This document shows, in pieces, positions 12,919-60,605 of a stretch of DNA of 64,000 nt; within the stretch, counting starts at the first letter, position 1; every line of letters starts with the position of its first letter. A program made the translations under genes and the position numbers. This DNA is from Lytechinus pictus. Its lineage: Eukaryota. The stretch lies in assembly GCF_037042905.1 (NCBI RefSeq), contig NC_087250.1, positions 18,538,001 through 18,602,000 on the forward strand, written 5' to 3'. The notes below the pieces were generated by a model that ran no database searches, was not told the origin of the DNA, and worked only from the letters and a program-made list of their open reading frames with translations.

Positions 12919-14255
12919 ACTAGAACAAATTACAAGGCAAATGCCAAGCGTTGTCTCGTCTGCATATTGCAGTCATGAAGAGACTGCATGTCAAAACTAC
13001 ATGTATGCTATATGACTTAGATGGACCTCTGTTACGAGTTTGGCGATCCCATCGCGAAGCTATAGAAAGTTATTGTGTGTACAACACAGCAGTGCCAGTC
13101 ATGGAAAGTTCATTGACCTTTGACCTTAATCAAATTAAACTCATAATTCGAACTTGACCTGCACCTTCAAGAGATGGACCTCTTGTTTGAATTTGGCAAT
13201 CCTACCTCGAAGATATAAAAAGTTATTATGTGTACAACAAAGCACAGTGCCAGTCATGGAAAGTTCATTGACCTTTGACCTTAATTAAATTCAACTCACA
13301 TTCGAACTTGACCTGCACCTTCAAGAGATCGACCTCTTGTTTGAATTTGGCAATCCTACCTCGAAGATATAAAAAGTTATTATGAGTACAACAAAGCACA
13401 GTGCCAGTCATGGAAAGTTCATTGACCTTTGACCTTATTCAAATTCGGCTCACATTTGAACTTGGCCCGCACCTTCAAGAGATGGACCTCTGTTATGAAT
13501 TTGGCGATCTCACCTCGAAGCTATAGAAAGTTATTGTGTGTACAACACAGCACAGTGCCAGTCATGGAAAGTTCATTGACCTTTGACCTTTTTCAAATTC
13601 GACTCATATTCGAACTTGACCTGTACCTTCAAGAGATGGACCTCTGGTATGAATTTGGTGATCCCACCTCGAAGATATAGAAAGTTATTATGTGTACAAC
13701 ACAGCACAGTGCCAGTCATGGAAAGTTCATTGACCTTTGACCTTATTCAAATTCGACTCATATTCGAACTTGACCTGTACCTTCAAGAGATGGACCTCTG
13801 GTATGAATTTGGCGATCTCACCTCGAAGCTATAGAAAGTTATTGTGTGTACAACACAGCACAGTGCCAGTCATGGAAAGTTCATTGACCTTTGACCTTAT
13901 TCCAATTTGACTCGTATTCGAACTTGACCTGTGCCTTCAGGAGATGGACCTCTGTTATGAATTTGGTGATCCCACCTCGAAGCTATAGAAAGTTATTGGG
14001 TTTACAAAGTTATTATGTGTACAACACAGCACAGTGCCAGTCATGGAAAGTTCATTGACCTTTGACCTTTGACCTTATTCCAATTTGACTCATATTCGAA
14101 CTTGACCTTTGCCTTCAGGAGATGGACCTCTGGTATGAATTTGGTGATCCCACCTCGAAGCTATAGAAAGTTATTGGGTGTACAACACAATTGTTGAAGA
14201 CGACGCCGGAAATAGTGATACCTATGTCTCGCTCCGCTACGCAGGCGAGACAATA
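12919..14255 (-). mobile_element. Helentron-associated (HINE-like) element with ~7.5 x 154-bp tandem array
   Basis: Absent from copy B; subterminal inverted repeats tgtctcg(c/t)ctgc, terminal stem-loop, 154-bp period (13246, 13400, 13554, 13708, 13862). Confidence 0.75.
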
Positions 14256-21995: not shown

Positions 21996-24110
21996 TAATG
22001 TTGTAAATCGGATCAAAAATCAGATCGAAAATCGGATCGGCAGTTAAGCTTCTAAAATCGAAATCGAATCGAAAATCGAATCGGCGATGTTTAAAAACAA
22101 AGGAATACATCAAAATTATGTTCGCGGTCGCGCGCATCTTCCTGACAAAGTCACATAGACGAATGCATTGGAATGGAAGTCGCCAACATGCGCGATCGTT
22201 TGGAACATGTTTTAAAGGGGTTTTGAGGTGCTATTGCTTTAAAATAAACCGAGTGATTTTTATTAGAAAGATAAACGAAAGACGCATCTTCCGAGCAAAC
22301 GCAAAGGAAAATAAAATGAAAATATTTCTCATAGATCACAGGTTAATGAACGATCGGCGGGACATCTTTTATAAGTATTTTTAGGTGCTAGCGATTTAGA
22401 ATTATTGGAATGATCTCTTGATCTCGTACGACGCATCATCTTAAAGTCGCAAGTGCAATTAAAATGTAGTACAAGACGCAAGCACGGACGATGATTTGAA
22501 ATGTTATTAAAATGTTTTGGGTAGCTAGCGTTTTCAAATCAATTTATTACTATCTTGAGAAATAAACTTTTGATATCTAAGAAGAAATATAAAAGCATCT
22601 CCCGACGAAGTTGCAAAGACAAATAAATTGAGGTTGAGAAGATGTAATCATCATAAAGGCTGTAAGAGAGTAGCGCAGTGAGCTCCGTCGTAAATACGAC
22701 CTTTCAAAGTTCACGGCGGGGTCCGCTATCACCACGAGGTTGAAAATAAAATGTATATCATCATGAACGATGTAAGAGAGTAGCGCAGTGAGCTCCGTCA
22801 TAAAAACGACCTTTCAAAGTTCACGGCGGCATCCGCTATCACCACGAGGTTGAAAATAAAATGTATATGATCATGAACGATGTAAGAGAGTAGCGAAGTG
22901 AACTCCGTCTGTAATACGACCTTTAAAAGTTCACGGCGGGGTCCGCTTTCACCACGAGGTTGAAAATAAAATGTATATCATCATGAACGATATAAGAGAG
23001 TAGCGCAGTGAACTCCGTCTGTAATACGACCTTTCAAAATTCACGGCGGCATCCGCTATCACCACGAGGTTGAAAATAAAATGTATATCATCATGAACGA
23101 TGTAAGAGAGTAGCGCAGGCAAGTACGTCTGTAATACGACCTTTCAAAGTTCACGGCGGGGTCCGCTATCACCACGAGGTTGAAAATAAAATGTATATCA
23201 TCATGAACGATGTAAGAGAGTAGCGCAGTGAGCTCCTTCATAAATACGACCTTTCAAAGTTCAGGGCGGCATCCGCTATCACCACAAGGTCGAAAATAAA
23301 ATGTATATCATGATGAACGATGTAAGAGAGTAGCGCAGTGAGCTCCGTCGTAAATACGACCTTTCAAAGTTCACGGCGGGGTCCGCTATCACCACGAGGT
23401 TGAAAATAAAATGTATATCATCATGAACGATGTAAGAGATTAGCGCAGTGAGCTCCGTCGTAAATACGACCTTTAAAAGTTAACGGCGGGGTCCGCTATC
23501 ACCACGAGGTTGAAAATAAAATTTATATCATCATAAACGATGTAAGAGAGTAACGCAATGAGCTCCGCCAGTAGCACGATCTTTAAAAGTCGCGGCGGGG
23601 TCCGCTATCACAACAAGGTTGAAGAGAAGATTTATATCATAAACGATGTAAGAGAGTAACGCAATGAGCTCCGTCAGTACGTAGCACGATCTTTAAAAGT
23701 TCACGGCGGGGTCCGCTATCACCACGTGGTTGAAGAGATTTCTATCAATCATTATAAAGGGGGTAAGAGAGAGTAGCGCAGTGAGCTCCGTCGGTAATAC
23801 GACCTTTAAACATTTCACGGCGGCAACTGCTATCACCATGAGTTGGAAGAGAAGATATCTATCCTCTTAAACATCGTCAGAGATAATACCGCGTCTTTCT
23901 CCCTGAATAATGCGACCTCTAAATAGCTAGCACCTCAAATACAATCTTGAATTTTGTTCTGGACGATCACGCACTGTAACTAGATCTACGCCGATTTTTT
24001 ATTTTCGATTTTTTCCTTCAAGGGGCATGATCGAAGATCGGCAAGTGATCGCCGATTGTGGTGAAATCGAATGGAATCGGTTGCCGATTGCAAAATCGGT
24101 TACAAGCTTA
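21996..24110. mobile_element. Non-autonomous hAT-type element carrying a 110-bp tandem array
   Basis: 8-bp TSD GGTGATTA (21988-21995, 24111-24118); imperfect TIR taatgttgtaa / ttacaagctta; subterminal aatcg(g/a) repeats. Confidence 0.8.
22661..23860. repeat. ~11 x 110-bp tandem repeat
   Basis: Unit starts at 22661, 22771, 22881, 22991, 23101, 23211, 23321, 23431, 23541, then two degenerate copies. Confidence 0.95.
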
Positions 24111-34759: not shown

Positions 34760-35590
34760 TCGATAGAAAAAATTTGCATTTCGATTGTTGTTTGCGTAAT
34801 TTCCACCGCAGTATTAAGGATCGGACGGAGTAACTGGCTGAGATTTGGAGGTAAGCGTTTAAAATCCCTTTTTAATAATACAGAGGACCAATTTTAAAAC
34901 TAGATTACATTATAAGATTTAGATTTTAGACGAATAAATCGATTACGCTGTAATGATTTTAGGCGTTTTTCATATTCACACATTCTTGGTGATGAATGAA
35001 AACGTCAAAGTTCATTATGAAATGACATGCGTTGTGCGAGGTTAGTAGTAGTACAACTAACCTCGCATGCTTGAGTGGCAATTGAACAGGCGTGCGTACA
35101 CTGCGCAGACATACACCCCTACACAAATATTGATAGGGTGGGACTACGAAAATTGGAACGGAAATATTTCGATTGTAAAAAAATGTAAATTCTTAGACGA
35201 ATACCTAATGTTAATTATCAAACAGAGATTATATAGATATATGTTGCTGTTGGTATACAAACAGGACATAATAAAATGCATAAATATAAAATTTATGCTT
35301 AATTTTATCAACTTACACTTTTAATACTCAACCATTCGGTTTTCTCCGAGTCTAGTCTGGCGCTATTTTCTGGTTACCCTATTTTCTCGACATCTTGACC
35401 CGTCGCCCTCTTTAGTTTGCTTGCTGTACAACTAAAGAGGGGAAGACAATTAATAGCCCTACTAAAAATAACAGAAAAGCAATTTAAAAAATTGTGAAAG
35501 TTAGAGAAATCCGATCAAAAAATGTAAAAAAATCACTAAATCATTAAATATTTTTTATTCGTGATGTCTTATGAAATCAATATCACTATG

Positions 35591-36749
35591 TGTAATGAAA
35601 GCTGCTTTGAAGATAATTTTGTACATCTAATTTTTCTGAAAAGCCATCAAATGATTTAATGTGTTAAAACTGAAGAATTTCATTGGGTCTGAGGGTCAGA
35701 CTATTTGAGTGAGCACACACACATTTTCTATGTATTTATACTGTGCATGTATAGTATATGTGCTTTGTATGGCTTGTCTGAGGTATTTTATTAATAGCGC
35801 CATCTCTTGGTCAACTGAGGTAATGTGATATTGAAATCAGTTCTGGAGATTCTGTTTGAGAATTTGAATCAAAATAAATCTAAAGCATCCTACATGGGAT
35901 TGCCCTATATAAGAAGATTTCTGGAGGCAAAGAGGTCAGTAGAAACATTGATTTATGTATTTAAGAAATATGAATGTTATAATGCAAGAAAAGTTTATTC
36001 TAATTTGGTTTGATTACATGACAGGCTTAATGCATCAATGTATGTGAAGAAAGATAACAGAAAGTATGTTTGTCAATTGTATCTCAAACACCTGATAATG
36101 CTATAGTATATTCTAATTGATGTCTAAGGGGGTGTTGCAAGAAAATATTTGCAATCAATTGCAAATATTGTGTTGCAAGTTTACAATCAGTAGATTAATT
36201 TTAACTGCAGCAAATCAGATTACACTCCTTATTTCAAGGAGCAGATTAGCAATCAGTTGCAAATTTGTAATTGATTGCAAGACACATGATTGATTTAGAG
36301 ACTGAAATTACACTTGCAATTGATCGCAAGTTTCTTTCAATGCCCCATAAGAGACAATTATATATTAGTATTAAGTACATGAATTTCACAGGTGTAATTT
36401 ACTGCTGACTGCTGAAGATGTTTGGTTGTATACAATTTAGTGAGAAGCTTTTCAGTGCTAAATATTTCAATGTATCTTGAAACTAGATTGTGATTTACAT
36501 TCAGGTCAAATGATTAATTTATCATAATGGTCAGAGTCATAAATGATGTAAAGTTTTATTGTTCTTGTACTTATGACTTTCCTATCATTTTGTTTCTACC
36601 AACAGTTTTCACGGAATTTGCTTCATGTCGATATAGAGAAAATGCTAAGAAGAAATGAATGAAGAATTAAAAGGATGACATGAAACTTTATATTCCTGTT
36701 GAGACCTTTGTTTTTATTTTTTGAACGCTCAAACAAGTCTTCAGTTACA
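35591..36749 (+). repeat. LTR 1 (936 bp plus 223-bp MITE insertion)
   Basis: TG...CA ends; near identity to the other LTRs. Confidence 0.95.
36128..36347. mobile_element. PIF/Harbinger-type MITE in LTR 1 only
   Basis: TAA TSD; TIR ggggtgttgcaagaaa / tttctttcaatgcccc; empty site tgtctaagagac in LTRs 2-4. Confidence 0.9.
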
Positions 36750-36798
36750 GTGAAAACTCTATGCAAAGACTTATTATCATTACATAAAAGGATTCAAG

Positions 36799-39700
36799 AT
36801 GTCCGAGCCTGCTGAATTAAAGAAAGTCACAGCTAATGGCGGTGGTGATGCAAGTGTAAGAACAAGGAAGCCGACTGAAAAAGGAATTCAAAATCAGTTG
36901 GATGCGAAGCTTAAAGCCTGGAAGAGTTCTCTCACCAAATGGAGAAGGCTTTCCAATAAACTTAGAGAGCTTCTAGTTGAAGATGAGGTTGAATCTTCGG
37001 TGATAAAGGATGGCCGTGATAACTTGCAAGCAGCCATGGACAATGTCATCTCAGTGCAGGAGAATTTAGCCGAATTATCTTCATCCCTAAATATTAATGA
37101 TAGCAGTGAGGAGAAATTTGATGAAATTGAAGAAGAACATTCCTCCTTGATGAAGGACACTTTAAAGACGCTTCTTGCACTACGAGGCGAAATGTCTTCA
37201 CATAAAGGAACTTCTCACTTGTCCGTCTCGTCAACATCATGAAAGTTGTGCCAGGAGTGGGTAGACGATTCAAGGAAGGTAAATTCTCCAAAGGAAAAGG
37301 ACATTACCACGATGAGAAGGATTGATGAACCAACCGATGATCCTGAAGCAGTGTCACACAAGAATGTGCATACATCAAGCCTTCATAAAGAAGAAGTTGC
37401 CCTTGCTAGTAGTTTGACGGAGCTTCTTCGCTTGAACAGTCTTCCAATACCTGAGCCTGGAGTTTTCGATGGTAATCCACTGGAATTCACATCATGGAAG
37501 CGAAGTTATGATGCTCTCATTGAACATCGCGGTATTCCAGCTGGAGAGAGATTCTACTTCCTGCTGAAGTATCTTACAGGTGCACCATTGGTGTTGGTGA
37601 AAGGATACTCCTTGCTGGGAGATGACGCCGCATATGTGGAAGCCATGAAGGTGCTACAAGAAAGGTACGGAAATCCCTTTGTTATTTCCAATGCCTTCCG
37701 GGACAAACTCGATGACTGGCCTAAAATCAGCCCCAAGGACTATTTAGGCCTTCGGAGATTTGGAGATTTTCTTCACCAGTGTTGTACAGCAGCCAGATAC
37801 GTCCATCACTTACATCATTTGGATGATGAAAGAGAGAACAAAAAATTGATGAGCAAACTGCCTGATTGGCTAATCACGAGATGGGGCAGGAATGTAGTCA
37901 AATGGCGGCAAGACAGAGGATCCTTTCCTCCCTTTTCTGTCTTCACAGAATTCATCTGCGACGAAGCAGATATCGCTTGTGATCCGATCACTTCTAATCA
38001 GACATCATCCTTGAAAGAAAGGAGACAGCAGTCTTCTAATGTGAGAACATTATCGACCAGTGTGCAGGGGCAGCAAGCAAATGGAGGGAAAGGAAAATGG
38101 AAACCCCTTTGCACCTACTGTAAGGGAGAACATCATCTTACTACTTGTAAATACTTCATGTCACAGACATTAGCTCACCGAACCAAATTTGTTTTCGATC
38201 ATGGTCTATGCTTTGGATGTTTAAAGTCCGGTCATCTATCTAAGAATTGTAAGAAGAGGTCATCATGTTAAACATGCAAAAGACGTCACCCCACTGTTCT
38301 GCATGAAAACTGGACAGAAAGACAAGAATCTAAGAAAGTTGAAATAAGGAATGAAGCTGAGGAAACTTAAACCACAAGATCTCATGCTTCAACCACGACG
38401 GACAATCACAGATCTCTAAAGACATCTACTATAGTTCCTGTGTGGCTATCGCATGAATCAGTACCTGGGGAGAGGTTAGTGTACGCTATGCTGGACACTC
38501 AGTCAGACACTAGCTTCATTTTAGATAAGACTAAGGAAGCAATGGGCATTGAAGGAATAGCAGTCAACTTGCTTCTTTCGACCATGACGCAGGCCAATGA
38601 GAGAATTTCGAGTGAAAAGATCAGTGGACTTAAGGTTCGAGCATTTAACGGAAGAGAAGAAATTTGTTTGCCCCCCACTTACACTCGGAATATTATGCCG
38701 GCAAATCGAGAACACATACCAACGCCAGACATTGCTAAGGCGCACTCTCACTTAAAGACATAGCCAAACATTTGATTCCCCTTCAAGATTGCGAGATTGG
38801 ACTTCTCATTGGCTATGATTGTGCAAGGGCTCTCACTCCGCGAGCTGTGTTAAGCTCCCCTGATGATGGTGGACCATTTGGATTACAAACTGATCTTGGA
38901 TGGAGTGTTGTCGGTACAATAGAACCCAACTATCATGACAGTGCGCATGATCATATTGGAATCAGTCATCGCGTTATGGTGCACGTTGTTCCAGAAGAAT
39001 TGCAAGTAGATGGCCATCCAACCACAGTTACCTTCAGCCATCAATCAAGGATTAAGGAAGAGATCACTCCCTCTCAAGTCATACGTCTTTTAGAAGCAGA
39101 CTTTGCACCAGAGAAAAGACAAAGGCCATATTCGAGGAATGACTTGAGATTTCTAGAGATAATGGAGCGTCAAGTTCATGTGTCTGAAAGTGGTCATTAT
39201 GAGATGCCCCTGCCATTTCGTGATGAAAATCCTACTCTTCCAAATAATAGGGTCCTTGCCGAGAAAAGACTCAATCATCTCAAGACAAAGTTTAAGAAGG
39301 ATCCTGTGTATCATGAACAATATACAAAACAAATGAATACCCTCTTCAATAGCAACTATGCAGAGGTCGCATCAGAATCAGGAGAAGAGGGTAAAGTATG
39401 GTACATTCCCCATCATTGAGTGAAACAGCCCAACAAGTTGAGAGTTGTTTTTGACTGCAGCTCGCAGTTTAGAGGAACTTCATTGAATGCTCACTTGTTA
39501 ACAGGACCGGATATGACTAATACCCTCACCGGTGTTCTTTGTCGATTCAGGAAAGAAGTCACGGCCTTCATGTGTGACGTGAAGGAAATGTTCCACCAAT
39601 TCCAGGTAAATAAAGAGCATAGAAACTATCTCCGGTTTCTATGGTGGTTAAACGGAGATGTTAGTCGCCGACTTAGTGACTGCCAGATGAACGTTCATCT

Positions 39701-42504
39701 GTTTGGTGCAGCTTCATCGTCTGGCTGTTCGAACCTTGCATTAAAGCAGATTGCAAAAGACTATTCAGATGAGTTTGGACATGATGCATCAGATTTCATA
39801 CAGAACGACTTCTACGTAGACGATGGGTTGAAATCTGTATCAACCGAAGATGAAGCCATTGATCTCATCATGAGGACGAGAAAGATTTGTGAACGTGGAC
39901 GTCTTCACCTGCATAAGATTGTATCCAACTCCAGAAAGGTAATGCAATCTGTTCCAGTTGATGACAGAGGAAAGGACCTCAAGGAATTGAATCTTTCGCA
40001 AGACACCTTGCCTGTGGAAAAGGCTCTCGGAGTCCAATGGTGCATTGAATCAGATAAATTTCAATTCAGGATCAACTTTCAGGATAAACCACTGACTCGA
40101 AGAGGAATCCTGTCTACAGTCATGTCAGTGTATGATCCTCTGGGACTATTAGCACCCATAATACTTCCTGCAAAGCTGATTCTCCAAGAATTATGTCGGA
40201 TTTCTGCTGAATGGGACGACCCCTTATCGGATACACTCAAAGCTAAGTGGGAACAGTGGAAGACCGACATTCTCCAACTTCAGTACATCTCCATCGATAG
40301 ATGCTACAAACCAAAAGACTTTGGAGAAATCAGAGATGTGCAACTTCATCACTTCAGTGATGCCAGTAACGCCGGTTATGGGCAGTGTACCTACCTGAGA
40401 CTTACAAATCAAGAAGACAAGGTGCACTGTACCCTGGTGATGGGAAAATCCAGGGTCACTCCTATCAAGACGGTAACCGTGCCCCGATTAGAGTTAACAG
40501 CAGCCCTGTTATCTGTAAAAATTAGTTCCTTTCTGCAAAATGAACTCGATTTTGTAAATGCCAAGCATTTCTTCTGGACTGATAGCAGAGTAGTTTTAGG
40601 CTACATTAAGAATGAAGCAAGACGATATCATGTTTTCGTAGCCAATAGAGTGAGTCAGATCAGAGACGAGTCACTGCCTTCACAGTGGCATCATATTGAC
40701 ACCAAAATAACCCTGCTGATACAGCTTCAAGAGGACTCACTGTCAATCAGATAGAGCAATCAAGATGGTTAACTGGCCCCAAATTCCTATGGGAGAAGGA
40801 AATTCCAGCTATTGAAAGTAAGGATGATGGCGAAATCCTTCCTAATGACCCCGAAGTGAAGCTAACTCAAGCTCATGCTGCTTTCAAGAAGAATGATGAG
40901 TTTGAGCTGGAACGACTAGACCGCTTTTCCAGTTGGCATCAAACCAGAAGGGCTGTAGCAAATTGTCTCAGACTAAAGTCCTACTTACGAAGACGATGTG
41001 AACAGAAGCATCAGAGAGCTAACCAGAAGAAAACGTTATCGAGCCTATGTCTGCTGAATTACTTGCCCAAGCAGAAAAGGAGATAATTAGGCATATACAA
41101 AGAAAGGCATTCCATGATGAAATTCAAAGACAGGAAGTTATGAAAAATGCCACTCAGACATCTTCTCGTGAGAGGAGACGTCATTGTAAGACTACCAGCC
41201 GTCTACAACAACTTGATCCATTTCTAGATGGTGAGAACATCCTGAGAGTAGGAGGTCGCTTGAGAAGGTCTAAAACTTCGTTCACAAACAAACATCCCGC
41301 CATCCTACCTCAAAATCATGTTACGGACCTGATTGTAGCTCATTGTCACAAAGAAGTTGCTCATCAGGGAAGAGGCATGACTACTAACTGTATCAGATCC
41401 CATGGTTATTGGATTTTGGGTTGCAGTAATCTTGTATCCAAGCTCATCTCTCGATGTGTTACCTGTCGGAAACTACGACGACCAACACAGGTACAAAAAA
41501 TGGCGGATCTACCAAAGGATCGTCTAACCTCTGAACCGCCATTTTCTTACTGCGGTATGGATTGCTTTGGACCATGGATAATCAGAGAAGGCAGAAAGGA
41601 GGTAAAGAAATACGGCCTTCTTTTTACTTGTATGTCGTCGCGTGCAATCCACATAGAAGTACTGAACTCGTTGTCCACTGATGCGTTTATTAATGCCCTT
41701 CGACGTTTTATCTCTGTTCGTGGTCCTGTTCGTCAATTGAGGTCGGACAGAGGAACAAATTTTGTTGGTGCCGAGAATGAACTCATGAAAGCTTGGAAGG
41801 AGATGAATCATGAGAAAGTTAAACAGCATTTGCTCCGAGAAGGATGCGATTACTTTGCCTTCACCTTCAACTTCCCCTGCTCAAGCCACATGGGAGGAGC
41901 TTGGGAAAGGCAAATACGTACTGTTCGTAGAGTCTTGGAAGCATTGCTGCGTCAAAATAGTCAGCAACTGGACGACGATTCACTGCGAACGTTGCTATGT
42001 GAGGCAGCAGCTATTGTGAATAGTCGTCCACTGTCTGTAGAATTCCTGAACGATCCATCTCACCTAGAGCCCATAACTCCAATTCTATTGTTGACTCAAA
42101 AATCAAGGGTAATACTTCCGCCACCTGGTGTTTTTCCTCGGGAGGACTTGTACGCAAAGAAACGTTGGAGAAGAGTTCAACATCTAGCAAATGAATTTTG
42201 GTCCCGTTGGAGGAAGGAATTCCTGAGTCAACTTCAATCAAGAAATAAATGGACTGTTCCACAGCGCGACATGAGGGTTGGCGATATCGTGTTAATCAAA
42301 GAAGAGAATATTCCCAGAAATATGTGGTCTCTAGGGAGAGTTGTTGAAACATATGCTTCTGGTGACACTCATATTCGCAAAGTGAAAATTGCAGTAGGTA
42401 ATTCAAAACTGAACAATCAAGGAAAGCGTGTTTCTCCACTGTCTCATCTCGACCGCCCAATTCATAAACTGGTTCTTTTGATCGCGCTAGAAGACCAAGT
42501 ATAA
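36799..42504 (+). pseudogene. BEL/Pao gag-pol, copy 1, disrupted
   Basis: Cys/His knuckles, LDTQS protease, YVDD RT, FSDAS RNase H, DDE integrase; stops at 37240, 38269, 38368, 39417 and frameshifts near 38750, 40705, 41035. Confidence 0.95.
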
Positions 42505-43764
42505 ATTCCCAGCCAAAGAGCCTATAGACATTTAATTAGGATTTTATCTTTCATTTAAATATGTTATTAATTGATATTTGTATAAAGCGAACTCAGAAAA
42601 TACAGTCAAAACGTGAAACCGAGAGACATTCATATTTGAGAACATATTTACTTTAGACTCTGATTGGACAATGATGCATTTCGAATCTACAGAGAAGACT
42701 GTATGAACATTTATGGTTGAAGAAGGATGAATATTTGACATAAATTTGAATTTCTTTATAAGATCGAGTAACTTATTATTCATTTTAAGGTCTGAAATTT
42801 AGACTAAAAGCTACATGTATCATATTTTATACATGTATTTGAGTCTGAATTCAGACTACATGTTCATGTTCAGTGAGATATATGATCTTGTTCTTTATAC
42901 TCGTAATGATCTACATGTATACAAGTACAATACAACAAAATTGTGAATTACTCTTAATCAGGTCTGAATTTTGAGACTAGTTATACTGTGGTGTGGCATA
43001 TAATACAAAGTGCTTCCTTTTCAATGACTGATATGTCATGTTAGATTTCATTCCACTTGTAATGTGCATCTAATGAAGGTTCATGTAATGCATGTATATC
43101 GTTTTCAAATGATCGACAAAAGTTTTGTCCACAGGATTGATTTTTTTTTATGCAAGTGAGTTTTATGAATCATATCACCTTTCTGACATAATGACGATAT
43201 AATGATTTAGTGATATCAACAGTTCACCTTTTGGACTATTACAGTTGCTCAAAGAAATCCTCGGATTGCATAAGGTTCTATGATATATAGGTAGTATAGT
43301 GTAAGTAGAAAAATAGAAATAGAAAGAATGTATTGTATCATATCTTTTAACAAGCAGTATTTAATTGACGTGATAAACGGTGTAGTCATCACCTTTTCAA
43401 TTACAGAATCTTACAGTTTCGTAGATTCAGGTTTTGATTTGAACAAAATTCTGTCGGCTTGATAAAATGCCGACTTTGGTAGTAATGTTAACTTTGGGCA
43501 CCGGATGGTTTAGTCATTTTTCTTGTGCCTTTTTATTCAAAGAAAACATAAAATTTGTATTGATAATAAAAAAAAAAAAAAAAAAGGGTGAAATTGTAGT
43601 ATCAGTGCACAATATTTAACATTTGTTTCTGCTGTAAGATATCTCAAGTCGTTCTTTGCAAGTGTAGCAATAATGAAATGTACATTTACTTTACTAAAGC
43701 TAATAAGGTACAGCTTTCTGTCTGAGCATGTTAGTAAATTAGAAATGATAATTTAAAGGAGCCA

Positions 43765-44700
43765 TGTAATGAAAGCTGGTTTGAAGATAATTTTGTATAT
43801 CTAATTTTTCTGAAAAGCCATCAAATGATTTAATGTGTTAAAACTGAAGAATTTCATTGGGTCTGAGGGTCAGACTATTTGAGTGAGCACACACACATTT
43901 TCTATGTATTTACACTGTGCATGTATAGTATATGTGCTTTGTATGGCTTGTCTGAGGTATTTTATTAATAGCGCCATCTCTTGGTCAACTGAGGTAATGT
44001 GATATTGAAATCAGTTCTGGAGATTCTGTTTGAGAATTTGAATCAAAATAAATCTAAAGCATCCTACATGGGATTGCCCTATATAAGAAGATTTCTGGAG
44101 GCAAAGAGGTCAGTAGAAACATTGATTTATGTATTTAAGAAATATGAATGTTATAATGCAAGAAAAGTTTATTCTAACTTGGTTTGATTACATGACAGGC
44201 TTAATGCATCAATGTATGTGAAGAAAGATAACAGAAAGTATGTTTGTCAATTGTATCTCAAACACCTGATAATGCTATAGTATATTCTAATTGATGTCTA
44301 AGAGACAATTATATATTAGTATTAAGTACATGAATTTCACAGGTGTAATTTACTGCTGACTGCTGAAGATGTTTGGTTGTATACAATTTAGTGAGAAGCT
44401 TTTCAGTGCTAAATATTTCAATGTATCTTGAAACTAGATTGTGATTTACATTCAGGTCAAATGATTAATTTATCATAATGGTCAGAGTCATAAATGATGT
44501 AAAGTTTTATTGTTCTTGTACTTATGACTTTCCTATCATTTTGTTTCTACCAACAGTTTTCACGGAATTTGCTTCATGTCGATATAGAGAAAATGCTAAG
44601 AAGAAATGAATGAAGAATTAAAAGGATGACATGAAACTTTATATTCCTGTTGAGACCTTTGTTTTTATTTTTTGAACGCTCAAACAAGTCTTCAGTTACA
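43765..44700 (+). repeat. LTR 2 (936 bp, shared)
   Basis: Preceded by purine tract aaaggagcca, followed by gtgaaaactct. Confidence 0.96.
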
Positions 44701-44749
44701 GTGAAAACTCTATGCAAAGACTTATTATCATTACATAAAAGGATTCAAG

Positions 44750-47700
44750 ATGTCCGAGCCTGCTGAATTAAAGAAAGTCACAGCTAATGGCGGTGGTGAT
44801 GCAAGTGTAAGAACAAGGAAGCCGACTGAAAAAGGAATTCAAAATCAGTTGGATGCGAAGCTTAAAGCCTGGAAGAGTTCTCTCACCAAATGGAGAAGGC
44901 TTTCCAATAAACTTAGAGAGCTTCTAGTTGAAGATGAGGTTGAATCTTCGGTGATAAAGGATGGCCGTGATAACTTGCAAGCAGCCATGGACAATGTCAT
45001 CTCAGTGCAGGAGAATTTAGCCGAATTATCTTCATCCCTAAATATTAATGATAGCAGTGAGGAGAAATTTGATGAAATTGAAGAAGAACATTCCTCCTTG
45101 ATGAAGGACACTTTAAAGACGCTTCTTGCACTACGAGGCGAAATGTCTTCACATAAAGGAACTTCTCACTTGTCCGTCTCGTCAACATCATGAAAGTTGT
45201 GCCAGGAGTGGGTAGACGATTCAAGGAAGGTAAATTCTCCAAAGGAAAAGGACATTACCACGATGAGAAGGATTGATGAACCAACCGATGATCCTGAAGC
45301 AGTGTCACACAAGAATGTGCATACATCAAGCCTTCATAAAGAAGAAGTTGCCCTTGCTAGTAGTTTGACGGAGCTTCTTCGCTTGAACAGTCTTCCAATA
45401 CCTGAGCCTGGAGTTTTCGATGGTAATCCACTGGAATTCACATCATGGAAGCGAAGTTATGATGCTCTCATTGAACATCGCGGTATTCCAGCTGGAGAGA
45501 GATTCTACTTCCTGCTGAAGTATCTTACAGGTGCACCATTGGTGTTGGTGAAAGGATACTCCTTGCTGGGAGATGACGCCGCATATGTGGAAGCCATGAA
45601 GGTGCTACAAGAAAGGTACGGAAATCCCTTTGTTATTTCCAATGCCTTCCGGGACAAACTCGATGACTGGCCTAAAATCAGCCCCAAGGACTATTTAGGC
45701 CTTCGGAGATTTGGAGATTTTCTTCACCAGTGTTGTACAGCAGCCAGATACGTCCATCACTTACATCATTTGGATGATGAAAGAGAGAACAAAAAATTGA
45801 TGAGCAAACTGCCTGATTGGCTAATCACGAGATGGGGCAGGAATGTAGTCAAATGGCGGCAAGACAGAGGATCCTTTCCTCCCTTTTCTGTCTTCACAGA
45901 ATTCATCTGCGACGAAGCAGATATCGCTTGTGATCCGATCACTTCTAATCAGACATCATCCTTGAAAGAAAGGAGACAGCAGTCTTCTAATGTGAGAACA
46001 TTATCGACCAGTGTGCAGGGGCAGCAAGCAAATGGAGGGAAAGGAAAATGGAAACCCCTTTGCACCTACTGTAAGGGAGAACATCATCTTACTACTTGTA
46101 AATACTTCATGTCACAGACATTAGCTCACCGAACCAAATTTGTTTTCGATCATGGTCTATGCTTTGGATGTTTAAAGTCCGGTCATCTATCTAAGAATTG
46201 TAAGAAGAGGTCATCATGTTAAACATGCAAAAGACGTCACCCCACTGTTCTGCATGAAAACTGGACAGAAAGACAAGAATCTAAGAAAGTTGAAATAAGG
46301 AATGAAGCTGAGGAAACTTAAACCACAAGATCTCATGCTTCAACCACGACGGACAATCACAGATCTCTAAAGACATCTACTATAGTTCCTGTGTGGCTAT
46401 CGCATGAATCAGTACCTGGGGAGAGGTTAGTGTACGCTATGCTGGACACTCAGTCAGACACTAGCTTCATTTTAGATAAGACTAAGGAAGCAATGGGCAT
46501 TGAAGGAATAGCAGTCAACTTGCTTCTTTCGACCATGACGCAGGCCAATGAGAGAATTTCGAGTGAAAAGATCAGTGGACTTAAGGTTCGAGCATTTAAC
46601 GGAAGAGAAGAAATTTGTTTGCCCCCCACTTACACTCGGAATATTATGCCGGCAAATCGAGAACACATACCAACGCCAGACATTGCTAAGGCGCACTCTC
46701 ACTTAAAGACATAGCCAAACATTTGATTCCCCTTCAAGATTGCGAGATTGGACTTCTCATTGGCTATGATTGTGCAAGGGCTCTCACTCCGCGAGCTGTG
46801 TTAAGCTCCCCTGATGATGGTGGACCATTTGGATTACAAACTGATCTTGGATGGAGTGTTGTCGGTACAATAGAACCCAACTATCATGACAGTGCGCATG
46901 ATCATATTGGAATCAGTCATCGCGTTATGGTGCACGTTGTTCCAGAAGAATTGCAAGTAGATGGCCATCCAACCACAGTTACCTTCAGCCATCAATCAAG
47001 GATTAAGGAAGAGATCACTCCCTCTCAAGTCATACGTCTTTTAGAAGCAGACTTTGCACCAGAGAAAAGACAAAGGCCATATTCGAGGAATGACTTGAGA
47101 TTTCTAGAGATAATGGAGCGTCAAGTTCATGTGTCTGAAAGTGGTCATTATGAGATGCCCCTGCCATTTCGTGATGAAAATCCTACTCTTCCAAATAATA
47201 GGGTCCTTGCCGAGAAAAGACTCAATCATCTCAAGACAAAGTTTAAGAAGGATCCTGTGTATCATGAACAATATACAAAACAAATGAATACCCTCTTCAA
47301 TAGCAACTATGCAGAGGTCGCATCAGAATCAGGAGAAGAGGGTAAAGTATGGTACATTCCCCATCATTGAGTGAAACAGCCCAACAAGTTGAGAGTTGTT
47401 TTTGACTGCAGCTCGCAGTTTAGAGGAACTTCATTGAATGCTCACTTGTTAACAGGACCGGATATGACTAATACCCTCACCGGTGTTCTTTGTCGATTCA
47501 GGAAAGAAGTCACGGCCTTCATGTGTGACGTGAAGGAAATGTTCCACCAATTCCAGGTAAATAAAGAGCATAGAAACTATCTCCGGTTTCTATGGTGGTT
47601 AAACGGAGATGTTAGTCGCCGACTTAGTGACTGCCAGATGAACGTTCATCTGTTTGGTGCAGCTTCATCGTCTGGCTGTTCGAACCTTGCATTAAAGCAG

Positions 47701-50455
47701 ATTGCAAAAGACTATTCAGATGAGTTTGGACATGATGCATCAGATTTCATACAGAACGACTTCTACGTAGACGATGGGTTGAAATCTGTATCAACCGAAG
47801 ATGAAGCCATTGATCTCATCATGAGGACGAGAAAGATTTGTGAACGTGGACGTCTTCACCTGCATAAGATTGTATCCAACTCCAGAAAGGTAATGCAATC
47901 TGTTCCAGTTGATGACAGAGGAAAGGACCTCAAGGAATTGAATCTTTCGCAAGACACCTTGCCTGTGGAAAAGGCTCTCGGAGTCCAATGGTGCATTGAA
48001 TCAGATAAATTTCAATTCAGGATCAACTTTCAGGATAAACCACTGACTCGAAGAGGAATCCTGTCTACAGTCATGTCAGTGTATGATCCTCTGGGACTAT
48101 TAGCACCCATAATACTTCCTGCAAAGCTGATTCTCCAAGAATTATGTCGGATTTCTGCTGAATGGGACGACCCCTTATCGGATACACTCAAAGCTAAGTG
48201 GGAACAGTGGAAGACCGACATTCTCCAACTTCAGTACATCTCCATCGATAGATGCTACAAACCAAAAGACTTTGGAGAAATCAGAGATGTGCAACTTCAT
48301 CACTTCAGTGATGCCAGTAACGCCGGTTATGGGCAGTGTACCTACCTGAGACTTACAAATCAAGAAGACAAGGTGCACTGTACCCTGGTGATGGGAAAAT
48401 CCAGGGTCACTCCTATCAAGACGGTAACCGTGCCCCGATTAGAGTTAACAGCAGCCCTGTTATCTGTAAAAATTAGTTCCTTTCTGCAAAATGAACTCGA
48501 TTTTGTAAATGCCAAGCATTTCTTCTGGACTGATAGCAGAGTAGTTTTAGGCTACATTAAGAATGAAGCAAGACGATATCATGTTTTCGTAGCCAATAGA
48601 GTGAGTCAGATCAGAGACGAGTCACTGCCTTCACAGTGGCATCATATTGACACCAAAATAACCCTGCTGATACAGCTTCAAGAGGACTCACTGTCAATCA
48701 GATAGAGCAATCAAGATGGTTAACTGGCCCCAAATTCCTATGGGAGAAGGAAATTCCAGCTATTGAAAGTAAGGATGATGGCGAAATCCTTCCTAATGAC
48801 CCCGAAGTGAAGCTAACTCAAGCTCATGCTGCTTTCAAGAAGAATGATGAGTTTGAGCTGGAACGACTAGACCGCTTTTCCAGTTGGCATCAAACCAGAA
48901 GGGCTGTAGCAAATTGTCTCAGACTAAAGTCCTACTTACGAAGACGATGTGAACAGAAGCATCAGAGAGCTAACCAGAAGAAAACGTTATCGAGCCTATG
49001 TCTGCTGAATTACTTGCCCAAGCAGAAAAGGAGATAATTAGGCATATACAAAGAAAGGCATTCCATGATGAAATTCAAAGACAGGAAGTTATGAAAAATG
49101 CCACTCAGACATCTTCTCGTGAGAGGAGACGTCATTGTAAGACTACCAGCCGTCTACAACAACTTGATCCATTTCTAGATGGTGAGAACATCCTGAGAGT
49201 AGGAGGTCGCTTGAGAAGGTCTAAAACTTCGTTCACAAACAAACATCCCGCCATCCTACCTCAAAATCATGTTACGGACCTGATTGTAGCTCATTGTCAC
49301 AAAGAAGTTGCTCATCAGGGAAGAGGCATGACTACTAACTGTATCAGATCCCATGGTTATTGGATTTTGGGTTGCAGTAATCTTGTATCCAAGCTCATCT
49401 CTCGATGTGTTACCTGTCGGAAACTACGACGACCAACACAGGTACAAAAAATGGCGGATCTACCAAAGGATCGTCTAACCTCTGAACCGCCATTTTCTTA
49501 CTGCGGTATGGATTGCTTTGGACCATGGATAATCAGAGAAGGCAGAAAGGAGGTAAAGAAATACGGCCTTCTTTTTACTTGTATGTCGTCGCGTGCAATC
49601 CACATAGAAGTACTGAACTCGTTGTCCACTGATGCGTTTATTAATGCCCTTCGACGTTTTATCTCTGTTCGTGGTCCTGTTCGTCAATTGAGGTCGGACA
49701 GAGGAACAAATTTTGTTGGTGCCGAGAATGAACTCATGAAAGCTTGGAAGGAGATGAATCATGAGAAAGTTAAACAGCATTTGCTCCGAGAAGGATGCGA
49801 TTACTTTGCCTTCACCTTCAACTTCCCCTGCTCAAGCCACATGGGAGGAGCTTGGGAAAGGCAAATACGTACTGTTCGTAGAGTCTTGGAAGCATTGCTG
49901 CGTCAAAATAGTCAGCAACTGGACGACGATTCACTGCGAACATTGCTATGTGAGGCAGCAGCTATTGTGAATAGTCGTCCACTGTCTGTAGAATTCCTGA
50001 ACGATCCATCTCACCTAGAGCCCATAACTCCAATTCTATTGTTGACTCAAAAATCAAGGGTAATACTTCCGCCACCTGGTGTTTTTCCTCGGGAGGACTT
50101 GTACGCAAAGAAACGTTGGAGAAGAGTTCAACATCTAGCAAATGAATTTTGGTCCCGTTGGAGGAAGGAATTCCTGAGTCAACTTCAATCAAGAAATAAA
50201 TGGACTGTTCCACAGCGCGACATGAGGGTTGGCGATATCGTGTTAATCAAAGAAGAGAATATTCCCAGAAATATGTGGTCTCTAGGGAGAGTTGTTGAAA
50301 CATATGCTTCTGGTGACACTCATATTCGCAAAGTGAAAATTGCAGTAGGTAATTCAAAACTGAACAATCAAGGAAAGCGTGTTTCTCCACTGTCTCATCT
50401 CGACCGCCCAATTCATAAACTGGTTCTTTTGATCGCGCTAGAAGACCAAGTATAA
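44750..50455 (+). pseudogene. BEL/Pao gag-pol, copy 2, same lesions as copy 1
   Basis: ORF pieces offset by 7951 with essentially identical translations. Confidence 0.95.
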
Positions 50456-51713
50456 ATTCCCAGCCAAAGAGCCTATAGACATTTAATTAGGATTTTATCT
50501 TTCATTTAAATATGTTATTAATTGATATTTGTATAAAGCGAACTCAGAAAATACAGTCAAAACGTGAAACCGAGAGACATTCATATTTGAGAACATATTT
50601 ACTTTAGACTCTGATTGGACAATGATGCATTTCGAATCTACAGAGAAGACTGTATGAACATTTATGGTTGAAGAAGGATGAATATTTGACATAAATTTGA
50701 ATTTCTTTATAAGATCGAGTAACTTATTATTCATTTTAAGGTCTGAAATTTAGACTAAAAGCTACATGTATCATATTTTATACATGTATTTGAGTCTGAA
50801 TTCAGACTACATGTTCATGTTCAGTGAGATATATGATCTTGTTCTTTATACTCGTAATGATCTACATGTATACAAGTACAATACAACAAAATTGTGAATT
50901 ACTCTTAATCAGGTCTGAATTTTGAGACTAGTTATACTGTGGTGTGGCATATAATACAAAGTGCTTCCTTTTCAATGACTGATATGTCATGTTAGATTTC
51001 ATTCCACTTGTAATGTGCATCTAATGAAGGTTCATGTAATGCATGTATATCGTTTTCAAATGATCGACAAAAGTTTTGTCCACAGGATTGATTTTTTTTT
51101 ATGCAAGTGAGTTTTATGAATCATATCACCTTTCTGACATAATGACGATATAATGATTTAGTGATATCAACAGTTCACCTTTTGGACTATTACAGTTGCT
51201 CAAAGAAATCCTCGGATTGCATAAGGTTCTATGATATATAGGTAGTATAGTGTAAGTAGAAAAATAGAAATAGAAAGAATGTATTGTATCATATCTTTTA
51301 ACAAGCAGTATTTAATTGACGTGATAAACGGTGTAGTCATCACCTTTTCAATTACAGAATCTTACAGTTTCGTAGATTCAGGTTTTGATTTGAACAAAAT
51401 TCTGTCGGCTTGATAAAATGCCGACTTTGGTAGTAATGTTAACTTTGGGCACCGGATGGTTTAGTCATTTTTCTTGTGCCTTTTTATTCAAAGAAAACAT
51501 AAAATTTGTATTGATAATAAAAAAAAAAAAAAAAGGGTGAAATTGTAGTATCAGTGCACAATATTTAACATTTGTTTCTGCTGTAAGATATCTCAAGTCG
51601 TTCTTTGCAAGTGTAGCAATAATGAAATGTACATTTACTTTACTAAAGCTAATAAGGTACAGCTTTCTGTCTGAGCATGTTAGTAAATTAGAAATGATAA
51701 TTTAAAGGAGCCA

Positions 51714-52649
51714 TGTAATGAAAGCTGGTTTGAAGATAATTTTGTATATCTAATTTTTCTGAAAAGCCATCAAATGATTTAATGTGTTAAAACTGAAGAA
51801 TTTCATTGGGTCTGAGGGTCAGACTATTTGAGTGAGCACACACACATTTTCTATGTATTTACACTGTGCATGTATAGTATATGTGCTTTGTATGGCTTGT
51901 CTGAGGTATTTTATTAATAGCGCCATCTCTTGGTCAACTGAGGTAATGTGATATTGAAATCAGTTCTGGAGATTCTGTTTGAGAATTTGAATCAAAATAA
52001 ATCTAAAGCATCCTACATGGGATTGCCCTATATAAGAAGATTTCTGGAGGCAAAGAGGTCAGTAGAAACATTGATTTATGTATTTAAGAAATATGAATGT
52101 TATAATGCAAGAAAAGTTTATTCTAACTTGGTTTGATTACATGACAGGCTTAATGCATCAATGTATGTGAAGAAAGATAACAGAAAGTATGTTTGTCAAT
52201 TGTATCTCAAACACCTGATAATGCTATAGTATATTCTAATTGATGTCTAAGAGACAATTATATATTAGTATTAAGTACATGAATTTCACAGGTGTAATTT
52301 ACTGCTGACTGCTGAAGATGTTTGGTTGTATACAATTTAGTGAGAAGCTTTTCAGTGCTAAATATTTCAATGTATCTTGAAACTAGATTGTGATTTACAT
52401 TCAGGTCAAATGATTAATTTATCGTAATGGTCAGAGTCATAAATGATGTAAAGTTTTATTGTTCTTGTACTTATGACTTTCCTATCATTTTGTTTCTACC
52501 AACAGTTTTCACGGAATTTGCTTCATGTCGATATAGAGAAAATGCTAAGAAGAAATGAATGAAGAATTAAAAGGATGACATGAAACTTTATATTCCTGTT
52601 GAGACCTTTGTTTTTATTTTTTGAACGCTCAAACAAGTCTTCAGTTACA
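51714..52649 (+). repeat. LTR 3 (936 bp, shared)
   Basis: As for LTR 2. Confidence 0.96.
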
Positions 52650-52698
52650 GTGAAAACTCTATGCAAAGACTTATCATCATTACATAAAAGGATTCAAG

Positions 52699-58410: not shown

Positions 58411-59669
58411 ATTCCCAGCCAAAGAGCCTATAGACATTTAATTAGGATTTTATCTTTCATTTAAATATGTTATTAATTGATATTTGTATAAAGCGAACTC
58501 AGAAAATACAGTCAAAACGTGAAACCGAGAGACATTCATATTTGAGAACATATTTACTTTAGACTCTGATTGGACAATGATGCATTTCGAATCTACAGAG
58601 AAGACTGTATGAACATTTATGGTTGAAGAAGGATGAATATTTGACATAAATTTGAATTTCTCTATAAGATCGAGTAACTTATTATTCATTTTAAGGTCTG
58701 AAATTTAGACTAAAAGCTACATGTATCATATTTTATACATGTATTTGAGTCTGAATTCAGACTACATGTTCATGTTCAGTGAGATATATGATCTTGTTCT
58801 TTATACTCGTAATGATCTACATGTATACAAGTACAATACAACAAAATTGTGAATTACTCTTAATCAGGTCTGAATTTTGAGACTAGTTATACTGTGGTGT
58901 GGCATATAATACAAAGTGCTTCCTTTTCAATGACTGATATGTCATGTTAGATTTCATTCCACTTGTAATGTGCATCTAATGAAGGTTCATGTAATGCATG
59001 TATATCGTTTTCAAATGATCGACAAAAGTTTTGTCCACAGGATTGATTTTTTTTTATGCAAGTGAGTTTTATGAATCATATCACCTTTCTGACATAATGA
59101 CGATATAATGATTTAGTGATATCAACAGTTCACCTTTTGGACTATTACAGTTGCTCAAAGAAATCCTCGGATTGCATAAGGTTCTATGATATATAGGTAG
59201 TATAGTGTAAGTAGAAAAATAGAAATAGAAAGAATGTATTGTATCATATCTTTCAACAAGCAGTATTTAATTGACGTGATAAACGGTGTAGTCATCACCT
59301 TTTCAATTACAGAATCTTACAGTTTCGTAGATTCAGGTTTTGATTTGAACAAAATTCTGTCGGCTTGATAAAATGCCGAATTTGGTAGTAATGTTAACTT
59401 TGGGCACCGGATGGTTTAGTCATTTTTCTTGTGCCTTTTTATTCAAAGAAAACATAAAATTTGTATTGATAATAAAAAATAAAAAAAAAAGGGTGAAATT
59501 GTAGTATCAGTGCACAATATTTAACATTTGTTTCTGCTGTAAGATATCTCAAGTCGTTCTTTGCAAGTGTAGCAATAATGAAATGTACATTTATTTTACT
59601 AAAGCTAATAAGGTACAGCTTTCTGTCTGAGCATGTTAGTAAATTAGAAATAATAATTTAAAGGAGCCA

Positions 59670-60605
59670 TGTAATGAAAGCTGGTTTGAAGATAATTTTG
59701 TATATCTAATTTTTCTGAAAAGCCATCAAATGATTTAATGTGTTAAAACTGAAGAATTTCATTGGGTCTGAGGGTCAGACTATTTGAGTGAGCACACACA
59801 CATTTTCTATGTATTTACACTGTGCATGTATAGTATATGTGCTTTGTATGGCTTGTCTGAGGTATTTTATTAATAGCGCCATCTCTTGGTCAACTGAGGT
59901 AATGTGATATTGAAATCAGTTCTGGAGATTCTGTTTGAGAATTTGAATCAAAATAAATCTAAAGTATCCTACATGGAATTGCCCTATATAAGAAGATTTC
60001 TGGAGGCAAAGAGGTCAGTAGAAACATTGATTTATGTATTTAAGAAATATGAATGTTATAATGCAAGAAAAGTTGATTTTAACTTGGTTTGATTACATGA
60101 CAGGCTTAATGCATCAATGTATGTGAAGAAAGATAACAGAAAGTATGTTTGTCAATTGTATCTCAAACACCTGATAATGCTATAGTATATTCTTATTGAT
60201 GTCTAAGAGACAATTATATATTAGTATTAAGTACATGAATTTCACAGGTGTAATTTACTGCTGACTGCTGAAGATGTTTGGTTGTATACAATTTAGTGAG
60301 AAGCTTTTCAGTGCTAAATATTTCAATGTATCTTGAAACTAGATTGTGATTTACATTCAGGTCAAATGATTAATTTATCGTAATGGTCAGAGTCATAAAT
60401 GATGTAAAGTTTTATTGTTCTTGTACTTATGACTTTCCTATCATTTTGTTTCTACCAACAGTTTTCACGGAATTTGCTTCATGTCGATATAGAGAAAATG
60501 CTAAGAAGAAATGAATGAAGAATTAAAAGGATGACATGAAACTTTATATTCCTGTTGAGACCTTTGTTTTTATTTTTTGAACGCTCAAACAAGTTTTCAG
60601 TTACA
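59670..60605 (+). repeat. LTR 4 (936 bp)
   Basis: Ends ttaca, followed by TSD ctatg. Confidence 0.96.

Follow-up and report, generated by a model that had tools for sequence, protein, structure and literature searches.

How does a retrotransposon begin reverse transcription if its primer-binding site is not of the type that a transfer RNA (tRNA) would bind? This question is raised by a long terminal repeat (LTR) retrotransposon of the BEL/Pao group that is arranged in tandem within a 64,000-nucleotide (nt) stretch of the genome of the sea urchin Lytechinus pictus (NC_087250.1, positions 18,538,001 to 18,602,000 of the forward strand; we call the whole stretch the window and number it from its first base). 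We propose that, in this BEL/Pao lineage, the primer for minus-strand DNA synthesis is not a tRNA but RNA of the element's own LTR, once that RNA has been spliced. We put the probability of this reading at about 0.7.

The starting point was a first-pass annotation of the window, which reported that a 9-mer, AGTTTTCAC, is present in all four LTRs (at 36604, 44555, 52504, and 60460, + strand) and that its complement, GTGAAAACT, directly follows each 5' LTR (at 36750, 44701, and 52650). Both are correct. The pair has 7 matches in the window where 1.19 are expected, and 7 or more were found in 0 of 100 shuffles. The register is as exact as claimed: the 9-mer after each 5' LTR begins at the first base past the LTR's CA, and the 3' end of a primer must sit directly past that CA because this position defines the edge of U5. 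The annotation was also right about the ATTAAA at 36666, which has a T-rich tract next to it, and about the site not being of the TGG type, as it starts with GTG; genome pattern scans, with ARAGORN run on the matches, gave no tRNA in a survey that was not exhaustive. At nine other genomic GTGAAAACT sites and at one GTGAAAATT site, no complementary 9-mer was found within 1500 nt upstream.

Two details of the annotation read differently once the LTR is examined. The "initiator-like CAGTT" at the 9-mer is better read as a 3' splice site, as a pyrimidine tract and then CAG are found there, and the pairing is not 9 nt long: the conserved site has 11 nt, and two of the nine bases are the terminal AG of an intron. 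The relevant features, all on the + strand, are as follows.

35906..35913 (copies from 44080, 52029, and 59985), +: the TATATAAG box, 21 nt before GCAAAGAG, recognized from sequence; a putative TATA-like promoter box
35927..35934 (also 44101-44108, 52050-52057, and 60006-60013), +: the end of exon 1, GCAAAGAG, followed by the donor GTCAGT; 5' half of the proposed split primer
44109..44556 (also 52058-52505 and 60014-60461), +: the 448-nt LTR intron (GT..AG); a pyrimidine tract precedes its CAG
35935-36605, +: the intron of LTR 1, including an insert
36606..36612 (also 44557-44563, 52506-52512, and 60462-60468), +: the start of exon 2, TTTTCAC; 3' half of the proposed split primer
36750..36760 (also 44701-44711 and 52650-52660), +: the core of the primer-binding site, GTGAAAACTCT, 11 nt, directly past the LTR's CA

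In order, the LTR thus has TATATAAG (44080), GCAAAGAG (44101-44108), the donor GTCAGT, the 448-nt intron, a pyrimidine tract ending in ACAG, and TTTTCACGG. When the intron is removed, AGAG joined to TTTTCAC complements all 11 nt of GTGAAAACTCT, and only the joined form does so. (With all of GCAAAGAG placed before TTTTCAC, 14 of 15 nt of the site's complement are present.) The last C of TTTTCAC complements the first base past the LTR. Given the 11-nt site and the split complement, the 9-mer turns out to be a composite of the 7 nt that follow the acceptor (TTTTCAC) and a leading AG that is the last dinucleotide of the intron, and which happens to repeat the AG that ends exon 1. So, the proposal of a self-priming BEL/Pao element stands insofar as the site complements the element's own LTR in register, but a primer made up just of the 9 nt from the A of CAGTT onward is not supported.

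Is this arrangement particular to the window? We found three further Lytechinus families, fam1b (L023), fam2 (L091, and L095 in L. variegatus), and fam3 (L048), whose gag proteins are 44-67% identical to that of the window element (fam1). In all window copies and in these three families, the site starts at the first base past the LTR's CA. GTGAAAACTCT is invariant over its 11 nt in the four families, although the downstream bases differ. The exon-1 end GCAAAGAG is kept in all four as well, within an upstream motif G(G)CAAAGAG|GT(T/C)AGT, and altered versions of it are found in relatives from starfish, coral, clam, and metagenomes. Other copies and the three further families keep both motifs of the annotation (in the LTR and at the site), although the sequence between them is unrelated and differs in length; the site is 135 to 261 nt from the LTR motif. 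Similarly, the donors (GAG|GTYAGT) and the acceptors (a pyrimidine tract and CAG) are conserved but the sequences and lengths of the introns (448, 460, 521, and 595 nt) are not. The joined complement is 11 nt in fam1 (14/15), 13 nt in fam1b, 14 nt in fam2, and 11 nt with a terminal G.U in fam3 (14/16 nt paired overall). Further BEL/Pao families of the window's genome have RT identities of 66-32%. (In L. variegatus CM031017.1, at L095 1-5985 and 14346-21965, a young fam2 element, with LTRs that are 99.9% alike, lies within a long satellite array.)

In more distant relatives, the pairing is kept by compensatory changes: LTR and site co-vary. In a coral, a C-to-U change in the primer is matched by a G3-to-A change in the site. 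In a clam, whose element has the target-site duplication GTGAC, both halves of the primer are unlike those of the urchin. By species, the pairs are UUUUCAC/GTGAAAA (urchin), UUUUUAC/GTAAAAA (coral), and AUAGAG|UUCGAC/GTCGAACTCTAT (clam). A scan of metagenome contigs with an alignment of the reverse transcriptase (RT) gave 80 loci at 50-62% identity, many of which have the same architecture with other primer/site pairs. An intron with GT..AG ends and a pyrimidine tract is present in all of the Lytechinus families, the coral, the clam, and most of the metagenome members. These relatives are listed here with the end of exon 1, the start of exon 2, and the site.

Oculina patagonica (coral, L098): exon 1 GAGAAAGAG, donor GTATGA; intron end ..TTTTCAG, exon 2 TTTTTACG; LTR end TTTACA, site GTAAAAACTCTTTGG; joined match 13 nt
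Mercenaria mercenaria (clam, L099): exon 1 CCAAATAGAG, donor GTATAA; intron end ..GATTTCAG, exon 2 TTCGACGG; LTR end TCACA, site GTCGAACTCTATGG; joined match 12 nt
L133: AGAAG, UUUAC; site GTAAACTTCT
L153: UGAAG, UAUUAC; site GTAATACTTCA
L103 and L106: AAUCG, UUUGAC; site GTCAAACGATT
L175: ACAUUGAG, UUGAC; site GTCAACTCAATGT
L112 and L137: AGAUAU, UUUAC; site GTAAAATATCT
L123: CGAUGU, UUUAC; site GTAAAACATCG
L145: AAAAGAG, UUCUUAC; site GTAAGAACTCTTTT
L115: CGUUG, UUGAC; site GTCAACAACG

Overall, there are at least 10 distinct primer/site pairs. Across 17 elements, nt 1-10 of the site are paired in 17/17 (with one G.U) and nt 11 in 16/17, while from nt 12 onward the pairing is random. The pairing is kept with up to three types of Watson-Crick pair per position: at nt 3 of the site, C-G, U-A, and G-C are all found. 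The exon-1 half of the primer and the distal half of the site change together (AUAGAG/CTCTAT, AAUCG/CGATT, UGAAG/CTTCA, and ACAUUGAG/CTCAATGT). Because the helix ends at the edge of the LTR in every lineage, is about 11 base pairs long, and remains intact through these changes, we read the exon-exon junction as the primer. In the starfish Patiria miniata (L096), the 3' LTR has exon 1, the intron, and exon 2 intact (GCAAGGAG|GTACAT ... TACCAG|TTTTCACGG). The site of this copy is lost because the 5' LTR is truncated, and a search found no other close Patiria copies; if our reading is correct, then the change in exon 1 to GCAAGGAG predicts that the Patiria site is GTGAAAACTCCTTGC. No LTR pair was found for the elements of Lingula (L093) and Lineus (L094).

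The joined form exists. For fam1, a contig of the public run X1 has 44106 joined to 44555, so that 448 nt with GT..AG ends are missing (the cut is shifted by +2). For fam2, there is an intron-less LTR in the genome, at G000:C13:2861557-2861593, in which the U3-end/exon 1 and exon 2 are fused (37/37 nt). This fits what would be expected from the reverse transcription of an RNA that was spliced in its 3' LTR. Finally, two metagenome contigs (L117 and L178) each have one LTR in the joined form and one in the intron form. In L178 (1-214 versus 6947-7265) it is the 5' LTR that is joined and in L117 (100-326 versus 6880-7103) it is the 3' LTR. As unequal LTRs do not arise from normal reverse transcription, these two may be assembly chimeras, recombinants, or derived from RNA.

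How often would such a split match arise by chance? We used every 20-mer of an element's own interior as a mock site and counted those that reached the observed split match. This happened for 62/13926 mock sites in fam1, 0/9700 in fam2, 0/12896 in the fam2 element of L. variegatus, 1/23724 in the coral, 1/14242 in the clam, 8/13322 in L103, 9/13192 in L104, and 1/10900 in L175. We also considered unconstrained scans for split complements, but the opposite strand gives as many matches as the element's strand, so we did not use these scans for counting. We relied solely on elements in which an LTR pair or the shared architecture fixes the site.

In minimum-energy folds of the spliced leaders, the junction pairs with the site in fam1 (11+3 base pairs), fam2 (14 base pairs), and the clam (12 base pairs), and the spliced-leader folds are more stable by about 10 kcal/mol. 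In the unspliced urchin leaders, taken from the acceptor, the site pairs elsewhere.

We therefore have the parts of a mechanism, which would work as follows. First, the 5' half of the primer (..AGAG) would end a short exon just past the TATA-like box, and the 3' half (UUUUCAC) would open the exon downstream of a GT..AG intron of 170-600 nt that is contained entirely in the LTR, so that splicing would build AGAG-UUUUCAC. Second, this sequence would pair with the 11-nt site GUGAAAACUCU directly 3' of U5, with its last C on the first base past the LTR. Third, the element's RNase H would nick after that C, at the end of the duplex, as in Tf1, and RT would extend the 3'-OH through U5. The strong-stop DNA would consist of U5 and the part of R past the primer, and would jump to the 3' R. 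A template with an unspliced 3' LTR would then give intron-bearing LTRs and a 3'-spliced template would give intron-less LTRs, which should be rare. Minus-strand DNA would start with the complement of the last base of U5, joined to ..AGAGUUUUCAC-3'. The primer may come from the 5' leader or from a 3' or trans copy, as we discuss below together with the likely position of the transcription start.

A stronger version of this proposal is that, in an ancient BEL/Pao lineage shared by cnidarians, molluscs, and echinoderms, reverse transcription must be licensed by splicing of the LTR intron. We regard this as a serious possibility, although somewhat short of an even chance. If it were true, only leader-spliced RNA would carry the primer, so that unspliced RNA would be the message and spliced RNA the template for replication; the 3' LTR would have to stay unspliced for the intron to be inherited; and the host spliceosome would be a direct gatekeeper of retrotransposition. 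Even short of an obligatory step, splicing could act as a switch that sorts element RNA into message or replication template.

Several observations weigh against priming by the spliced LTR. The donors GTTAGT, GTCAGT, and GTATGA are weak. Run X1, which has the joined contig, is only guessed to be RNA. Three sets of raw RNA-seq reads from the species, each sampled to about 6%, had 0 reads on the LTR or leader, which is uninformative. The priming and the cleavage are steps that we infer. In the coral, the minimum-energy fold of the spliced leader prefers another pairing over the junction-site helix. Among the metagenome members, L178 has a 14-nt pair but a 4-nt spacer that separates its site from the end of the LTR, and L163, which has a short LTR of about 200 bp, has a contiguous 10-nt complement (TGTTTTTTAC / GTAAAAAACA) and no intron. 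This complement lies at about 5973-5982 and 6075-6084 of L163, which also has a 4-nt spacer after its LTR; in L163, the priming scheme may be present in a naturally intron-less form. In Lineus longissimus (L097), there is a donor-like CCAAAGAG|GTTAGT in the LTR, yet the post-LTR sequence is unrelated. (That sequence, ATCACATGTAAAAT.., fits neither the junction nor a tRNA site of the TGG type; L097 6843-6858 and 7362-7390.)

The transcription start raises a further difficulty. In fam1, TATATAAG precedes GCAAAGAG by 21 nt and the donor is overlapped by a TCAGT initiator, which predicts a start at about 44112, four nt inside the intron. A transcript from the 5' LTR would then lack exon 1, the junction could arise only from the 3' LTR or from a read-through RNA, and the primer would have to come from the 3' end or in trans. 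Several other members have an AT-rich box 36-37 nt before the donor, which would put the start 6-7 nt before the donor. In that case, the first 10-14 nt of the spliced RNA would be the primer, in exact analogy to Tf1. A start just a few nt before the donor would make the first exon 4-8 nt long, which is unusually short for splicing.

We considered three other explanations. First, the junction-site helix could be real but have a regulatory or packaging role, for example as a switch by which spliced RNA keeps its site hidden or as a dimerization mark, with an unidentified host RNA as the primer. Packaging or the control of translation could depend on a long-range helix beside U5, as in retroviral leaders. 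The 4-nt spacer in L178 shows that the register is not absolutely fixed. This explanation seems unlikely because the helix ends exactly at the first base past the LTR in 17/17 elements, a position that would be set by the 3' end of a primer, and because it extends for 10-11 base pairs and is then random, which is the length of the primer duplex of Tf1. From retroviral and Tf1 replication, the site is expected to be recopied from the primer in each cycle, and a site that is copied from its primer would explain perfect pairing through many changes. With a host primer, the site would be expected not to vary, but lineages within single collections have different sites, and the non-exhaustive tRNA survey gave no fit.

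Second, transcription could start at the A of CAGTTTTCAC, with the unspliced first 9 nt (AGUUUUCAC) folding back as in Tf1, as the first-pass annotation had it; GCAAAGAG and the GT after it would then be irrelevant. In all window copies, there is indeed a perfect 9-nt complement in register, the poly(A)-type signal and T-rich tract that come next would suit a short R/U5, and the unspliced LTRs of the relatives keep 7-9 nt of complement. Also, coral and clam RNAs that begin at the acceptor's AG fold their 5' end onto the site in minimum-energy folds; the unspliced urchin leaders do not fold the 9-mer onto it. This model leaves nt 10-11 of the conserved site unexplained, as well as the co-variation of the exon-1 half with the distal half of the site. 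In every lineage, a pyrimidine tract and CAG precede the 9-mer, and the exact exon-exon junction has been observed. In L103, exon 1 does not end in AG, and the unspliced match drops to 7 nt while the joined match stays at 11 nt. We consider an unspliced primer to be quite improbable.

Third, the primer could come from a host tRNA. The complement of the site as a 15-mer, with up to 2 mismatches, is found in the 812-Mb genome at chance level (725/730 versus 610/633 for the control). The exact 15-mer matches are copies of the element plus two places without a tRNA, and there was no tRNA at the 24 non-element loci that were tested. No tRNA came out of a genome scan for AGTTTTCAC with a T-loop after it, and Rfam gave no match in the LTR or the leader. 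The tRNA set is incomplete because the Rfam tRNA scan scored 63 of roughly 73,000 candidates, and mitochondrial tRNAs were outside the survey; within this non-exhaustive survey, no host tRNA with a complement to the site was found, and we rejected tRNA and half-tRNA primers given this and the chance-level counts. The genes for tRNA-Glu(TTC) do contain TTTCAC (6/7 of the exon-2 nt) and then CCACGCGG.. (with the base ahead of TTTCAC unread). A fragment of a host tRNA, for example a tRNA-Glu(UUC) 5' half that ends in the anticodon loop UUUUCAC, or another small host RNA, is very unlikely to prime at GTGAAAACTCT: by our own reasoning TTTTCAC resembles that anticodon loop, and half-tRNA priming is known for copia-type elements (PMC6317226), but the results just given offer no such tRNA and the site varies between lineages along with the element's own LTR. 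(At G000:C4:9,700,000-9,736,000 we noticed a dense cluster of dozens of tRNA genes, 0.5-1.4 kb apart.)

We now turn to the element itself. It is a BEL/Pao (Semotivirus) LTR retrotransposon, because its internal region codes for DUF1759, Peptidase_A17, integrase, and DUF5641. In Pfam searches, the gag DUF1759 (PF03564) is on 37246-38271; Peptidase_A17, the Pao-type aspartic protease that adjoins the RT, matches PF05380 at 39420-40754 of the window (E = 9.5e-50); and integrase (zinc-binding and rve domains) and then DUF5641 are downstream of the RT, on 41047-42504 (PF17921, PF00665, and PF18701). The copies form an array at 35591-60605 with the structure LTR-int-LTR-int-LTR-int-LTR, that is, with three internal regions that are 99.3-99.9% alike and four LTRs. 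The LTRs begin with TGTAATG and end with GTTACA, so they have TG..CA ends, and LTRs 2-4 are 936 bp. All of these features are on the + strand.

35591..36749, +: LTR 1, the outer 5' LTR, 1159 bp (self-BLAST and termini)
36666..36671 (copies from 44617, 52566, and 60522), +: ATTAAA polyadenylation-type signal, then the T-rich U5
36799..43751, +: internal region of copy 1, with a 147-amino-acid open reading frame (ORF), gag, Pao protease/RT, and integrase plus DUF5641 (Pfam and ORF list)
43752..43764 (also 51701-51713 and 59657-59669), +: polypurine-type tract TTTAAAGGAGCCA ahead of the next LTR (from sequence)
43765..44700, +: LTR 2, 936 bp, common to copies 1 and 2 (self-BLAST and termini)
44701-51713 and 52650-59669, +: internal regions of copies 2 and 3
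51714..52649, +: LTR 3, 936 bp, common to copies 2 and 3 (self-BLAST and termini)
59670..60605, +: LTR 4, 936 bp, the outer 3' LTR, followed by the target-site duplication CTATG (self-BLAST and termini)

The 5-bp target-site duplication CTATG is present only at the outer ends of the array (35586-35590 and 60606-60610), which suggests either one insertion followed by unequal exchange between LTRs or an effect of the assembly. The junction between the polypurine-type tract and the LTR (..GGAGCCA|TGT) is also found in fam2, starfish, coral, and clam, and the poly(A)-type signal is downstream of the primer sequence in every family that we inspected. Stop codons and frame changes break the window copies, and copies elsewhere in the genome have open frames of 1922 amino acids. 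The best protein matches come from L. variegatus (94%) and L. pictus. The 147-amino-acid ORF (36799-37242) is in frame with gag-pol with one stop codon between them, and the open copies have the same layout, so it may be a separate leader ORF or part of a read-through design. LTR 1 is 1159 bp long because of a 219-bp insert (36129-36347) that resembles a miniature inverted-repeat transposable element and that the other LTRs lack; it has the ends GGGGTGTTG.. and ..CAATGCCCC and a duplication of TAA(G). This insert lies inside the intron of LTR 1 and lengthens it from 448 to 671 nt. Elsewhere in the window there are satellite-like tandem arrays at 12961-14189 and 22537-23716, with periods of 154 bp and 110 bp, and a masked or gap stretch of 823 nt (a run of N at 5862-6684).

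If the primer is indeed formed by splicing, then a new principle applies: it is not encoded contiguously but is assembled by the splicing machinery, which would tie the start of reverse transcription to the host's spliceosome. This would explain why tools that look for tRNA sites report no primer-binding site in these elements, and it gives a simple sequence rule for annotating them. It also predicts rare intron-less LTRs as fossils of 3'-spliced templates. Finally, the natural series of at least 10 compensatory primer/site pairs amounts to a ready set of mutants for biochemistry.

How does this compare with known systems? Retroviruses of the human T-lymphotropic virus 1 (HTLV-1) and bovine leukaemia virus (BLV) type have a splice donor in R, within the leader that derives from the LTR, and the RNAs of copia and Ogre elements are spliced. 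The window element likewise has a donor in the LTR-derived leader. In those systems, though, the acceptor is in the body of the element and the products are subgenomic messenger RNAs (mRNAs), whereas here the LTR contains both donor and acceptor, and the site is complementary to their junction.

The fungal GalEa elements with a "Conserved Hairpin Site" and the TRIMs (miniature retrotransposons with terminal repeats) of bivalves have no recognizable primer site (PMC5445492, PMC6934838). Like the window element, these are LTR elements without a tRNA site that have short conserved inverted repeats near the LTR end. Unlike it, their repeats are in the internal region past the LTR, they have no splice junction, and no mechanism has been proposed. 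Half-tRNA priming in copia elements (the Osser, Bryco, and Bianca lineages) resembles our case in that the site does not start with TGG, but those sites match internal parts of tRNA-Met or tRNA-Ile, whereas here there is no tRNA match and the site co-varies with the LTR.

Self-priming is established for the Tf1/sushi group and has been predicted for the plant Tcn1 clade and for the TAR lineage of copia elements (PMC6317226, PMC6934838, PMC5445492). For the TAR lineage of Ty1/copia (Houba and Osr-1), the prediction was made from LTR-site complementarity alone (PMC6317226). So, as here, self-priming was proposed from complementarity, and outside of Ty3/gypsy; the TAR elements differ in being plant elements with a contiguous complement and no intron. 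A survey of BEL/Pao elements does not mention primer sites (PMC3118150). In the literature that we searched, we found no paper on priming by self RNA in BEL/Pao or on a spliced primer, in agreement with the annotation's impression that self-priming had not been described for this group, and we could find no described counterpart of a split, splice-dependent primer.

The closest comparison is with the Tf1/sushi group itself (Tf1, Tf2, Maggy, Skippy, and sushi-ichi; also the Tcn1 clade). As in these elements, there is no tRNA site, and the LTR transcript of the element itself contains the complement of an 11-nt site by U5. The edge of the LTR is exactly where the duplex ends, with a core of 10-11 nt here versus 11 nt in Tf1. 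Unlike in Tf1, the complement is split by a GT..AG intron of 170-600 nt and is formed only at the exon-exon junction; the primer may or may not be the first nucleotides of the mRNA, and cleavage by RNase H would follow by analogy. The group belongs to the Ty3/gypsy superfamily, whereas the window element is BEL/Pao, with a Pao protease, DUF1759, and DUF5641, and its Pfam domains, being specific to BEL/Pao, place it outside the Tf1/sushi clade. As we read it, the window element is one that works like Tf1 but stands outside that clade, and self-priming would extend to a third superfamily of LTR retrotransposons, BEL/Pao, in which priming has hardly been studied.

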